The notes beneath the pieces were generated by a model. It saw only the letters and a list, made by a program, of their open reading frames with translations. It did no database searches and had not been told where the DNA came from. From Orbicella franksi (taxonomy: Eukaryota), in contig OZ116699.1 of assembly GCA_964199315.1 (NCBI GenBank), positions 28,644,001 to 28,708,000 on the forward strand: a stretch of 64,000 nucleotides of DNA, read 5' to 3'. Both the position numbers and the translations under genes were made by a program. Position 1 is the stretch's first letter. Each line of letters opens with the position of its first letter. Shown here piece after piece: positions 29,548 to 64,000 of the stretch.

Positions 29548-29601
29548 ATGTGTAACAGAGCAGTGCTTTTGAGGAGTGTGACTGTTCTGGTTTCTTTAGT
29601 A
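29548..29601 (+). CDS. Duplicate (distal) signal-peptide exon MCNRAVLLRSVTVLVSLV
   Basis: ATG to GTA|gtgcgt, phase 0, compatible with the acceptor at 32161; copy of 31057-31110 (MCNRAVLVRSVTLLVSLV|gtgagt). Confidence 0.6.
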
Positions 29602-30905
29602 GTGCGTATTTTATGATTCTTTCTTCTTTCCTCTCCTAAATTGACATTTCTGCCAAAATAATTGGAGCAAATCGAATCACTTCTTAAAAAAGAGTTGCTT
29701 GCGCTTGTAATTACGACGTGATCAGCTGCTCATACATGTCATAACTAAGCGGTAAATGTTTAATTGATGTTTGCAACAGACTTTTCTTAGATACACTAAA
29801 GGGGAAGCTTGTTGTTGCGGAAGTTTATAAACTTTTGACTGTACCAGACATTTATAATGAATTTCTTGTGTTACCGAATGCAAGTCTCTAAAAAATTATG
29901 GTTTTATGGTGCTTAAGGTGTTGCATTTCAGTTGTACCGTTCCTAGACATTATGTTCGGTACATAGTAAAGTGAAACTGATGTAAAAAACAAATCTCCTT
30001 AAATAGCAGGTCGTGGCCTGCTGACATTCTAGTGGTACTTGAGCCAGGTTTCCTTTTTCCATTACTTCTGCGTTAGTTTTCATTTTAGATGTCCACGTAA
30101 TGCTGAAACTTTTCACCAAAGAAAACAAACATGCAGCGAGAACGAGACCTTAAACTTTGCTTAAAGAAACATTAGTGATAAAATCCAAATCTTACTATTG
30201 TTTATACATATTACAGAATCCAAAAGCGTTCTTTTGATCAACTTTCATTTAGTTCTTGCTTGCTATGATTCTGGATCGGAAAGAATTCACGCGAAGGAAT
30301 TGAATAAAGCTGTCATGAATAAGGCAAGATCTGAGCGTGCCATTTACTCTCGAGATTATCATTTTATTAAGTCTTACCGTGTATTTTATTTTCATGTTTA
30401 AACTTACCTTAAGTTTATTCAGCCTTGTACCATAACACCAAAACAGCAAAGTAACGCAAACAGATTTATAGGTTCAAGAATGTAGGATGGTGATTTTTAT
30501 AATGCACAACAACAGGATAATAACAAAAGCCGCATGACAACATAAGGAAATAATCTGAACTTTTTAGAGTTGCTATACAGTTTTATGACTTTATGGTGCT
30601 AGTCAGTTAGTGTGAACCTGGCTTAAGATTATGCATGAATACTTCCTCTGTAACTCTCTAGTAATACGTGCTTTTGTAACTTCAGATATCAGCAAGGTGT
30701 TGTGCTATACCTTTAAAACTGGCCAATCACATGTTACTAGACACGGAAAAGCAAAACAGGATGAAGCTTCTAAACAATGTGTTGTTCTTCTTACAAGTAA
30801 CATTACCCATGAATATGGTTCAGTATTCAATTCCTCCGAAATAACATATCGCGATCAAATAAACAAGCCGATGAACAGGAAGAAGAAACTCCAGGTAATT
30901 CTGCC

Positions 30906-30913
30906 TATATATA
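30906..30913 (+). promoter_or_regulatory. Candidate TATA box of the CILP-like gene (proximal copy)
   Basis: TATATATA about 150 nt upstream of ATG 31057; CCAAT at ~30723. The distal copy reads TTTACATA (29397-29404). Confidence 0.4.
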
Positions 30914-60500: not shown

Positions 60501-62519
60501 TACAACTTTTACAAAGAAATGTGCTCCAAGGGGCAAGTTTAGCCCCCTGGCATACATTTCTTTGTAAAAATTCGCGAGTTTGGGTCCCATATATTTTTTT
60601 CAGTTTCTAACGGATTCTTATGAATCTTCGTATAGTTACTACAGCGAGCGCTAAGGCGTAGTTGTTTGAATTAACAAACCGAAAAAGCGTGGCATCGATA
60701 AAAAGGTGCATTGGTCGTGTAGCACTGTGCTCCTACTCAGATTTTCTGTTACAGTTTTAAACGCTAACTTCCGTCTCATTATTATTATAGGTTACATTTG
60801 AAGGAATACGGGGAAGTGATTCCCAGGGTGACATCGCAATAGACGATTTTGTGTTGGAACCAGGATCTTGTTCTTCAAGTGAGTTTAAGAGAGTGTTCAA
60901 AACTAGAGTTTTTAGGGCATTTTCGATGACTGAATTGAATATTTGGAAATAACTGAGTTTAAGAACTGGCAATAATGTCAATAACACGTCCAGAAACCGA
61001 GTTTCAGAAGTAAAGCCATGGGAACGTCGTTGCTGCTATACAGTTACGTATCACAGCGATGATTTAATTTCGGTGTATTCTCCGACCTCTTTTGAGGCGG
61101 GTGGCGGGTGGCGGGTGGCGGGTGGCGGGTGGCGGGTGGCGGGTGGCGGGTGGCGGGTGGCGGGTGGCGGGTGGCGGGTGGCGGGTGGCGGGTGGCGAGT
61201 GGCGAGTGGAGAGTGGAGAGTGGAATTCTTCTACGCCAAGCGACTCGGTCACGTACAACCACTGCTGCCGCGTTCCACAACGGTGTGAGTCTGTGGGTCT
61301 GCAGTTCTGCCTGCCGGGTTAGTCGAGGGATAGAAGCTTGACAAAAGGTCAGCACCTGGTCCTGGAGGTTAGGCTAATCAACTGATCCTGTACCCTGTGA
61401 TTACGGAAACTTTACACATTTTAGACAGTTTAACAAGTCTCAGCGACACGGTGGTATGACACTCCAAAGTTAAGGCCGGGTGGAAACTCTGGAGCCGAGG
61501 ATGTTACTAGGGCACCCTAAAACACAGCTGAGGTTAGGGAATTGGAACGTGAGAACCTTGTACGCACAAGGGAAAGCGGCCCAAGCGGCTAAAGTGCTGG
61601 TAGAGCATAGGTTGCAGATTATGGGTATAAGTGAAAGTTGGTGGTGTAGATCGGGGAACTAAATATTGAGGAATATTGTTTTCTGGATGAGCTCAGGTGT
61701 GGCGCATTTGCTTCCTTTTTTTCTCTCTCTCTCCCGAGCAATCTGACTGACTTTCTCGTCTTTAACCATCAGGGAACGTTGCCATTAATGGTTTTGCAAA
61801 ACAGTTGTCTAGGGGTTTGCCCGGGGGGAGGGTATTGGGCATTGCTGGGATTGAGTGACGCATTATACCCTAAGAAATCAGTAAATTAAATACATCCTTG
61901 TAAAAATGCATTTCTTAAAAATGTTGCCAAAGCGCGAATAATAGGTTCAGGTCACCACAAATAGGATAAAAGGCACCTAGGAACAAGATTACTATAATAA
62001 AAATATTAATGCTAATTACTATCAAGATTACTAGCGTGGTAAAATGCAGTGGCCAAATGCGTCAATCAATTATATCATGTAAATTAAAAACCTTTGCCAA
62101 GTGGACAGACTCCTTCGTAGGGAAAGCCAACACAGAACTTATTACTCAATGAATTTCACAACTCTGTTGGCTCGTCAGCGCTATTGATGTTCACACAAAA
62201 TCAAGAGGGGCGATGTTTACGAGGCCATGTAATGACCCTCTCCAAACCAGAACCTCGTGGCAATTTCTTCAAATAACGTGTTAATTTTCGATGTTTCTTT
62301 CTTAGTTTTCTTTCTTTCTATCTCATATGATTCAACTCTACTCTACCATATAGATTAATTACTTTTTCATTTCCCTTTTCAGAGGCCGGGTTAGCTTGCA
62401 GTCCGACAGAAATAATCAATTTTTCCGATAAGGTTTTGCAGAGTATATCTTATTTCCGTACCATAGCCTACCGGGCTGGCAGTGAGCATCCTTTGGTTCA
62501 AAGGCTGAGAAGTGCAAAG
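57427..62519 (+). CDS. MAM-domain protein, paralogue of the CILP-like gene (partial; probably continues beyond the window)
   Basis: Exons 57427-57469 (APDASGRKDIEITK), 58544-58678 (FGCNFDTSICGFIQDNNDNFNWTRNMGDTSTAGTGPSADHTTG), 59339-59580 (GYYMYIETSSPR...CLKFYYHMYG...W), 60791-60878 (VTFEGIRGSDSQGDIAIDD...C), 62383-62519 (AGLACSPTEIINFSDKVLQSISYFRTIAYRAGSEHPLVQRLRSAK). All phases are compatible. Confidence 0.85.
59630..60445 (+). repeat. tRNA-headed repeat split by a nested MITE (59825-60416)
   Basis: Head ggcttgatagctaagttagtagagcattgcaccgg...ggttcgaaacc; nested TIRs AGATCGTTTTC / GAAAACGATCT flanked by ATAT; the host resumes gatctttcatatattcac. Confidence 0.75.
61097..61222. repeat. (GGCGGGT)n heptanucleotide tandem repeat
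   Basis: About 14 perfect units, then GGCGAGT and GGAGAGT variants. Confidence 0.95.
61225..61690 (+). mobile_element. 5' end of an RTE-like LINE (start of the AP-endonuclease domain), 3'-truncated
   Basis: LRLGNWNVRTLYAQGKAAQAAKVLVEHRLQIMGISESWWCRSG matches the GTWNVRT...LGISE.RW.GSG endonuclease motif; stop at 61662 and no RT follows. Confidence 0.7.
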
Positions 62520-64000
62520 GTGTGTAAAGTGTAATGGGAAACAAGTGATGTAGTCGAGTGCCTTTCGCTACTTCTTTAGTGCTCTACCGCTTCCTAAGTG
62601 CTTTACAACAGAACATAGCACAGCCGAAGCTTCTTTCTTTCTGTTTGATAAAGAATCCTTTAATTTCCCCACACATGCATTCGCCAAGTATTTTAAAATC
62701 AAACAATATTTTCCAATACCAAACGAGTAAAAACGGCGTAAGCGTATTTTAAAAGTACGCTATAATAAGCCAATTACAATACTTTTTAGAATTGTTCAAA
62801 TAATTTGAACAACGAGGCAACAGCTGTCAATCAAACGCAAGACTTAGAGAAACTTTAGGTTTCGAGTGACTTTCGAGAGAAGAACAATCGCTTCAAAGTT
62901 CGCTTTTTAGTTTAAAGATGATTTCCAGTCCGTAGTGCAGTCTCAGCAGCCCAATGTTTGCGAGTCTCACTCTATAGAATGCGAAATTTTAAATTCTTTT
63001 TCCGACAGTTTCTTTGATTTTTACAGCTACGGAGTTTTTTCACCACGTAATATCAGTAATATCAGAAAGAACGAGGAATTGAATAAACCTTCGCATCCAT
63101 AATGGCGGTTGATTCACCTCATGTAAGTAATTGCGAAATGTTACATTTTGTGACGTCTTACAAAAGTTAAAACAGAAAACGTGAACGAACTCTTGAGAGT
63201 GCGCAGACGGGACTGGAAATCCTCTTTAATTTAAAAATGAAGGATCTAAAAGTTTCTTGTCTAGTGGAATCTGACCGGATTGTGGCTCATGAAAATGCTC
63301 ACTTTTCTTACGGAAATTACGAAACAAAGAGCTCAAATCTCGCGATGAAAATGCGAAACGGTTTCACAAGCGAAATACTGCCAGTGAAGTTTGAATGATA
63401 TATAATCGCCTTTTTACGGTTCACACGGCGAAAAACATGATACGCGGCTCCTGATTGAACATATCGTTTTTTCCACACGTGAAAAACCCGATACACACCA
63501 TTTGATTGGCTTACAGCTACTGAGACCAGCTTGTGAATGAGAATTTGCTTCGCGCCTTTTCAGTGGGTAAAGATAATCTCAGTATATATGAAATAAGTTG
63601 TGTTATTCTGTTTACTACGTGATTACCCTTATACTGTTTTGTGGGAATCTAGCACATTTTTAACTCTACTGTTGCTAACAATGGCCTCCATGCATCTATG
63701 CTCATTGCTGACAAATCCGTTTTGAAATTTGAAATTCGGTAGCTTACCGCCCGCGTGCATCTGTACTCTTTTTCAACCAATCCGAACGCGTGTTATTTCG
63801 AACGATTATTGTAACATAAAACACGGGGATATTTTGCTCATTGCTCATATTTTTCCGAAGCGGCGACGAAAAATTATCCAACATCAGATTATACAACAGC
63901 AAATGCTTCTTTCTCCTTAGCATCTTTGCTGTAGCTGAATAAAATGTCGCGTTATTACTGAAGTCAACTAAGTCTCGTGTCAGCTTTCTCACATTACTGA

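Follow-up and report, generated by a model that had tools for sequence, protein, structure and literature searches.

A tandem cluster of genes resembling CILP1 and CILP2 was analyzed in a window of 64,000 nucleotides from Orbicella franksi (contig OZ116699.1), which corresponds to C2:28644001-28708000 of a 497-Mb genome. The cluster holds two genes, referred to here as gene A (unit 1) and gene B (unit 3), and a terminal exon standing by itself between them, unit 2. All elements are on the + strand unless stated. Gene B overruns the end of the window; 22 kb more were added, and the window numbering was extended to 86000. Pfam searches were performed exon by exon to assign domains, and exon boundaries were read from the sequence at every junction. 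Self-comparison was carried out with blastn, and related exons were found with tblastn. The models of both genes are predictions from AG/GT sites, intron phases and open frames. A contig from another coral (L015) served as the reference for the ancestral arrangement and for the ratio of non-synonymous to synonymous substitution rates (dN/dS, or omega), and two contigs of independent assemblies from other samples (L017 and L018) were also compared.

Gene A runs from a signal-peptide exon through a follistatin/Kazal (FS) domain, a SPARC-type EF-hand region, two TSP1 domains, a carboxypeptidase-regulatory-like fold, an Ig domain and CILP_5th to a CILP terminal exon. The ten exons after the signal-peptide exon are all bounded by AG/GT sites, their introns are mostly phase 1, and when spliced they form a single open reading frame (ORF) of 1140 amino acids (aa). 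The Kazal, linker and EF exons together make up a SPARC-type FS-EC pair. The CILP domain (PF23591) opens the long C-terminal region and scored 46.5 bits in unit 1 and 42.1 bits in unit 2 (cut-off 27). Compared to L015, the exons of gene A have dN/dS values of 0.06–0.48, with 0.06 for the carboxypeptidase-regulatory-like exon and 0.16 for the Kazal exon, whose acceptor is conserved in L015 and in the contig L020.

Gene B carries three MAM exons in place of the Kazal exon, and the spliced MAM translation has four cysteines. The MAM3 donor and the linker acceptor at 62383 are both phase 1. From the linker on, gene B matches gene A exon for exon. Past the end of the window it continues with an EF exon at 64697-64904 (SPARC_Ca_bdg, 33.1 bits versus a cut-off of 22), two TSP1 exons, a carboxypeptidase-regulatory-like exon, two Ig exons, CILP_5th and, 7 kb outside the window, a terminal exon at 70969-72662 in window numbering. 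The spliced model has canonical AG/GT sites throughout and yields a single ORF of about 1226 aa. At the protein level the two genes are 39–51% identical in the EF and linker exons, rising to 77–100% in the body; the terminal exon of unit 3 is 86% identical to that of unit 1. Tail to tail with gene B lies an intact, intronless KLHL (BTB-BACK-Kelch) gene of 583 codons on the - strand (75407-77155; C2:28719407-28721155). The intron that separates MAM3 from the linker contains a tandem repeat of 21-nt units at 61068-61340 (GGWRVAG in one frame), which is adjoined by a fragment of a non-LTR retrotransposon endonuclease at 61474-61659.

The initial annotation had described three related units on the + strand, and Pfam, self-comparison and the spliced models found all of their elements present. 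The Pfam check that it had proposed, run on the exons, supported the domain assignment of each one. Its layout for unit 1 (signal peptide, Kazal, EF, two TSP1, Ig and CILP, with two candidate first exons) was borne out by the per-exon matches and the one spliced ORF, and its layout for unit 3 (a signal-peptide-like exon, MAM, then a linker in common with unit 1) by the tiling of the MAM model and the 51% identical linker. The wider claim of a tandem family of CILP-like genes with differing N-terminal modules holds as well. The coordinates of the features are collected in the table.

Table. Features of the CILP-like cluster, in window numbering.
Feature	Position	Strand	Evidence
Degenerate promoter-proximal and signal-peptide-like copy, ATG 26090, donor destroyed	25599-26143	+	blastn, tblastn, alignment
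Tandem duplication, two 1.51-kb units (29122-30632, 30636-32142), 95.8% identical	29122-32142	+	self-comparison
Gene A signal-peptide exon, distal copy MCNRAVLLRSVTVLVSLVV, donor motif altered to GTGCGTAT	29548-29602	+	alignment
Gene A signal-peptide exon, proximal copy, donor GTGAGTAC as in all intact copies	31057-31111	+	exon conserved in L015
Gene A FS/Kazal exon, ten cysteines, phase 1-1	32561-32791	+	Pfam Kazal_2, 29.5 bits versus cut-off 22.8
Gene A linker exon, start of SPARC-type EC region, phase 1-0, counterpart in gene B	33828-33952	+	tblastn, spliced model
Gene A EF-hand pair exon	34393-34579	+	Pfam SPARC_Ca_bdg PF10591, 36.1 bits versus cut-off 22
Gene A TSP1 exons, each phase 1-1	34994-35164, 36887-37060	+	Pfam TSP_1 twice, above cut-off
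Gene A carboxypeptidase-regulatory-like / transthyretin-like fold exon	37623-37898	+	weak Pfam CarboxypepD_reg match, below cut-off
Gene A Ig I-set domain over two exons	38329-38434, 38857-39014	+	Pfam, per-exon matches just below cut-off, as expected when a domain is split
Gene A CILP_5th exon	39240-39533	+	Pfam PF23708, 57.4 bits, E 1.7e-15
Gene A current terminal exon, CILP domain and RPKR site, recombinant	40024-41723	+	sliding-window identity, spliced model
Copy of gene B 3' flank	41724-45160	.	87–90% identical to 72.7-76.4 kb
Duplication junction, copy of 3' part of Ig2 exon (no acceptor) and intron	45152-45475	+	self-comparison
Unit 2 terminal exon, acceptor and ORF intact (568 codons), ancestral stop lost (16-aa extension)	45653-47391	+	L015 comparison
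Gene B signal-peptide exon, distal copy MFRVAVLLKSVAILVSFAV	51238-51292	+	ortholog in L015 at 14888
Gene B signal-peptide exon, proximal copy, donor motif intact, 85% protein identity to distal copy	54590-54644	+	alignment
Gene B MAM domain, three exons, unit phase 1-1 overall	58544-58678, 59339-59580, 60791-60878	+	exons tile Pfam MAM PF00629 positions 1-40, 44-124, 131-158
Gene B linker exon, in frame with MAM3 donor	62383-62519	+	51% protein identity to unit 1 linker

Source of the Kazal and MAM modules

The Kazal module of gene A and the MAM module of gene B fill the same slot, and a swap between them would be possible because both lie between phase-1 introns. The nearest relatives of the MAM2 exon in the genome are about 15 exons at C2:38.16-38.27 Mb, with 63–78% identity. 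This multi-MAM array, 9.5 Mb away, is made of MAM exon triplets that have the boundaries and phases of gene B and even its flanking intron bases, with 68–90% protein identity. The region C2:38160000-38272000 as a whole is a large array of such triplets, about 2 kb apart, and probably represents one or more multi-MAM matrix genes. A further close MAM copy was observed at C4:19074173; two other CILP-like loci are about 170 kb away from it.

The nearest FS exons, at C5:28061353 and C5:33174756, are each 1.5–1.8 kb upstream of the nearest EF exons (C5:28063161 and C5:33176221), and these pairs are two ordinary SPARC-like genes. No EF or FS matches were found near the other CILP_5th-bearing loci of the genome (5/5 loci), and neither MAM nor Kazal occurred in any of 150 representative CILP relatives. 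By tblastn at E below 1, gene B showed no Kazal remnant and gene A no MAM remnants. Exon shuffling at the DNA level, already proposed in the initial annotation together with interchangeable N-terminal modules, is supported as the account of the MAM versus Kazal difference because the MAM unit has the exon structure of the multi-MAM gene and both modules lie between phase-1 introns; the common slot, the flanks and the match at C2:38.2 Mb all agree with that proposal.

FS and EC go together throughout the SPARC family, and genes A and B both retain EC, which favors an FS-EC-CILP ancestor. In the simplest history, with its presumed polarity, the ancestor would have gained a SPARC-like N-terminus (follistatin/Kazal plus EF-hand EC) ahead of a TSP1-TSP1-transthyretin-like-Ig-CILP body and would then have been duplicated in tandem. 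Gene B would afterwards have traded its single Kazal (FS) exon for the three-exon MAM unit, which may derive from, or share a recent common ancestry with, the multi-MAM gene on the same chromosome.

It is rather improbable that the MAM exons stand outside the main gene B mRNA, either skipped, with the signal-peptide exon spliced to the linker (this too is in frame), or making up a short MAM transcript of their own. Skipping a phase 1-1 unit would indeed leave the frame intact, and the MAM exons are weakly constrained, with dN/dS of about 0.5–0.6 compared to L015. However, all six MAM splice sites are identical in that species, where the 455 nt are open and free of stops and indels. Homologous signal-peptide exons upstream and the homologous body downstream place the MAM exons inside gene B. 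Moreover, the MAM3 donor, GTGAGT, needs an acceptor farther downstream, and the first that matches its phase is that of the linker.

Last exons of gene A

The current terminal exon of gene A is a hybrid. Its sliding windows up to ~41020 match unit 2 (about 95% identity), and those beyond that point match unit 3 (about 94%). The best single breakpoint, at 41006/41009, fits 461/513 informative sites, with A-type sequence before it and B-type after it; a minor mixed patch was seen at 39965-40240. The copy of the gene B 3' flank that follows ends in a KLHL fragment on the - strand (44151-45160, Pfam Kelch), which is 5'-truncated and frameshifted. Three stretches account for the copies: 45152-45475 corresponds to 38886-39207, 45474-47213 to 39845-41602, and 39929-45160 to 70880-76428 including part of the KLHL gene. 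Unit 2 (45152-47391) starts with a copy of the last 129 nt of the Ig2 exon and of intron sequence (92.9% identity to the source), and its junction with the KLHL fragment carries a 7-bp microhomology, AAGAAGA; this junction is also present in L017. The CILP_5th exon sits in the gap between the two source stretches of unit 2.

In L015, the gene A body is directly joined to a unit-2-type terminal exon and flank, followed by an intergenic region, one B-type signal-peptide exon and MAM1-3. Because of this direct join, unit 2 is identified as the ancestral last exon of gene A. By the same comparison, the segment at 39.85-45.16 kb, with the hybrid exon, the gene B 3' flank and the KLHL fragment, is identified as derived. 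Unit 2 had been described earlier as an intact terminal exon without its 5' half, which agrees with the intact acceptor and 568-codon ORF and with the absence of CILP_5th or anything further 5'. It had also been counted as one of three tandem units. The related units are present but are not equal in rank, since unit 2 is the displaced last exon of gene A.

Mis-joins of haplotypes or repeats during assembly could in principle create duplicated first and last exons, and the first-exon duplication is a near-identical tandem repeat known from this assembly. This explanation is scarcely credible for the cluster as a whole. Both the junction of KLHL fragment, Ig2 and unit 2 and the arrangement of CILP_5th, hybrid exon and gene B flank recur in L017 and L018; L017 is 97% identical across 44709-48988, and L018 94–96% identical across 39085-43322. 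DNA runs of two organisms contain all of the unit 2 words, and the copies are 5–13% different, far beyond haplotype divergence. The unusual junctions are thus reproduced in independent assemblies, and the cluster arrangement is real and no assembly artefact. Since L017 and L018 carry the same junctions, the sequence comparison also indicates that the rearrangement is common to close relatives. Synonymous divergence (dS) places it after the split from the L015 species (dS about 0.20) and before that from the L018 species (dS about 0.11).

Two steps could have produced this arrangement. A microhomology-mediated (7-bp) tandem duplication would first have taken in the DNA from a point within the Ig2 exon of gene A to a point within the KLHL gene downstream. 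In the first copy, the A and B terminal exons would then have recombined, and the resulting deletion would have left the hybrid last exon with the gene B 3' flank; the second copy would have lost CILP_5th in a further small deletion. An equally possible alternative to the two steps is one template-switching event. In either case the old last exon would have been stranded 5.6 kb downstream, where it would be decaying.

Exchanges of this kind are not confined to this locus. The terminal exons of other corals are A-type, B-type or hybrids of both kinds, and 3' ends were exchanged repeatedly in other species (P0018-20, L019). In L019, a gene A body with a third TSP1 exon ends in a wholly B-type terminal exon beside an intact KLHL gene. 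The L020/L021 contig holds another family member upstream of a Kazal-type gene. For this member, in a more distant coral, the 8 kb between the signal-peptide and EF exons (L021:3067-11400; ena:ERZ25067872:ctg20051_32x_l) yielded no Kazal, MAM or other Pfam domain, and it may have a third N-terminal module or none.

The initial annotation had also suggested alternative last exons, and unit 2 could be one if it were maintained. The donor at 39533 would then splice to either 40024 or 45653 and give two C-terminal halves, which, at only about 60% identity, would make different isoforms. Both acceptors are phase 1 and intact, the unit 2 frame is uninterrupted, and the omega of the unit 2 branch since duplication is about 0.4, not 1. 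Several RNA data sets also contain 0.11–0.21 of the words of the unit 2-specific part. Nonetheless, such maintenance is unlikely. The comparison of unit 2 with the sister genome in L017 gave an omega of 0.94 (synonymous changes, 7; non-synonymous changes, 23), whereas that of the hybrid exon with its chimeric counterpart in L018 gave 0.28. By Fisher's test the ratios are different (p = 0.018), and that of unit 2 is compatible with neutrality and not with an omega of 0.28 (binomial p = 0.002). On the branch since duplication, the N-terminal half of unit 2 has accumulated 12 synonymous and 17 non-synonymous changes, compared to 11 and 7 in unit 1.

Other features of unit 2 point in the same direction. 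Its ancestral stop codon is lost, and L017, which has the same rearrangement, carries frameshift deletions of 49 bp and 10 bp in this exon. A complete 3' flank lies upstream of unit 2, behind the hybrid exon. Of the words in its specific half, a share of no more than 0.21 is present in RNA contigs, word shares being too coarse a measure for the expression of a single exon, and in the polyA RNA contigs of one organism the share is, by the same coarse measure, only 0.15 although the DNA of that organism has all the words. Unit 2 is therefore probably a young decaying relic rather than a maintained alternative last exon.

First exons and the overall history

Five homologous copies of a promoter-proximal block with a signal-peptide exon are present, at 26090 (degenerate), 29548, 31057, 51238 and 54590. 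Duplicated first exons had been noted before, and both genes do contain them (29548/31057 in gene A and 51238/54590 in gene B). The 1.51-kb duplicated unit of gene A spans the promoter, the signal-peptide exon and the start of intron 1, and L015 has a single copy of it. The alternative use of first exons suggested in the initial annotation would be neither favored nor opposed by the indirect evidence, except that in the distal copy at 29548 both overlapping donors are changed. The degenerate copy aligns with gene B DNA ahead of the 54590 exon (25599-26002 with 54169-54551, 68% by blastn), and its relic exon is 67% identical to the unit 1 signal-peptide exon by tblastn. Every intact copy of the signal-peptide exon ends in GTRAGTAC, and the alignment shows a promoter-proximal block common to the copies. 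Because the block and the exon are held in common, the homologous DNA upstream of units 1 and 3, which had been recognized earlier and extends here to five copies, is the duplicated 5' end of the ancestral gene. In both genes the first exons were duplicated along with their promoters.

A 130-nt element was also observed at 50540-50671, 51091-51219, 53779-53906, 54423-54553 and 25871-26002, where it precedes the B-type signal-peptide exons and the 26090 relic. It may be part of the duplicated promoter or a small mobile element.

Taken together, we assign a probability of roughly 0.72 to the reading in which A and B are two paralogous genes for secreted CILP-type matrix proteins, with a module swap in gene B, a later hybrid last exon in gene A and a decaying unit 2. 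The sequence comparisons show the domains, the exon boundaries with their phases and open frames, the breakpoint and the junction of the duplication, the older arrangement in L015, and the contrast in selection between unit 2 and the hybrid exon. We infer the order of the steps, the Kazal domain as the ancestral module, splicing of MAM into the gene B mRNA, and the secretion, furin cleavage and matrix role of the products.

Several observations weigh against this reading. The strong donor GT of GTRAGTAC is phase 0, and the conserved exon-2 acceptors, which are the same homologous AG before Kazal and MAM1 in several species, need phase 1. The predicted frame would hold only via a weak GT four bases downstream (GTAC), or with an intervening exon that has not been seen. 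A phase-0 acceptor at 32534, upstream of the Kazal exon, was considered as a way to restore the phase and was rejected, as there is a stop in the L015 frame and no matching AG before MAM1. The MAM exons evolve fast, and their conservation is barely above that of their introns. Unit 2 is still a complete ORF here with an intact acceptor, its branch omega since duplication is only about 0.4, and some residual use of it could still occur. The counts underlying the omega estimates are small.

A broader proposal is that hybrids of a SPARC or MAM module with CILP form a coral-lineage matricellular class, in which diversity would arise through ongoing recombination and a choice of duplicated promoters and first exons, and unit 2 would still supply an alternative C-terminus, either in small amounts or during a particular life stage. 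We consider this improbable.

Farther upstream in the window, an unrelated gene at 18412-22918 (+) has long ORFs rich in serine and acidic residues and ends about 3 kb before the 26090 relic. Retrotransposon remains at 2600-5040 include a reverse-transcriptase-like ORF (3673-4713), and an inverted repeat lies at 5482-6281.

Relation to known matrix proteins

Genes A and B have TSP1, Ig I-set, CILP_5th and CILP in the same order as vertebrate and amphioxus CILP1/CILP2, as well as a dibasic R-x-K-R site in the long C-terminal region. Relatives in the databases, from Branchiostoma, Oculina and Dendronephthya, bear the names CILP1-like or CILP2-like. They differ in that the terminal region is only about 25–35% identical and in the added N-terminus, of SPARC-type FS-EC or of MAM-EC, which occurs in 0/150 relatives compared. 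Only the vertebrate proteins are known to be cleaved by furin and to antagonize TGF-beta and IGF. The RPKR motif is conserved in both models (residue 802 in gene A, residue 891 in gene B), presumably where furin cuts vertebrate CILP, and the link to furin processing drawn in the initial annotation would fit this site.

Gene A shares with the SPARC/BM-40 family (SPARC, SMOC, FSTL1, testican) a ten-cysteine FS/Kazal exon, then a helix exon, and then an EF-hand pair that includes a C-x(n)-C-D-x-D-x-N motif. Its FS-to-EF spacing is the same as in the C5 SPARC-like genes of this genome. By tblastn, no trace of an FS/Kazal domain was found in gene B, and gene A alone has the FS feature of the family. 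In contrast to SPARC/BM-40 proteins, acidic domain I is absent, the EC region is short (about 105 aa), and the FS-EC pair accounts for just the N-terminal tenth of the protein (about 1160 aa). Genes A and B carry a SPARC-like module and are not SPARC family members, because a CILP-type body of some 1000 aa is attached to the pair.

In its division into three exons and in their splice phases, the MAM domain of gene B agrees with the repeats at C2:38.2 Mb, and in this it is like the coral multi-MAM matrix proteins. Those proteins, examples of which are skeletal-proteome proteins with MAM and LDL-receptor domains, differ from gene B, which has a single MAM on a CILP-type body and no LDLa. Domain shuffling in coral skeletal proteins has been discussed (PMC3748352).

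The hybrid last exon resembles the hybrid genes of the globin and opsin clusters, which arise through segmental duplication and non-allelic homologous recombination, in its sharp single breakpoint within homologous exons, in the co-duplication of flanking DNA including a truncated neighbor gene, and in the microhomology junction. Unlike those cases, the product lies inside a gene as a new proximal last exon that orphaned the old one, and there is no whole-gene fusion or deletion.

Coral "CILP" genes appear in disease transcriptome and proteome studies under automatic names and without structural description (PMC9524840; bioRxiv 10.64898/2026.09.01.748617). No description of a SPARC- or MAM-CILP architecture was found in the literature, which is weak evidence of novelty as annotated orthologues were not retrieved. 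Two alignment-based protein searches returned no full-length coral orthologues, one profile having only 196 match states and the other giving only amphioxus relatives. Protein searches for close relatives returned terminal-exon ORFs and no annotated full-length model. The architecture is a new variant of a known protein type, and a clear, not revolutionary, case of exon shuffling and unequal recombination that leaves general principles unchanged.

By analogy with the known proteins, genes A and B would encode secreted matrix glycoproteins in which FS-EC may serve calcium or collagen binding and MAM adhesion and oligomerization, on a CILP-like body. The cluster is an unusually complete natural example of the assembly of a matrix protein, with SPARC-type and MAM modules in the same phase-1 slot of CILP-like paralogues. 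The probable source of the MAM module is still recognizable in the genome, and a dated recombination has replaced half of a last exon, leaving its predecessor orphaned. The predicted models define two CILP-type proteins with calcium-binding or adhesion modules, which are candidate components of the mesoglea or of the calcifying matrix.

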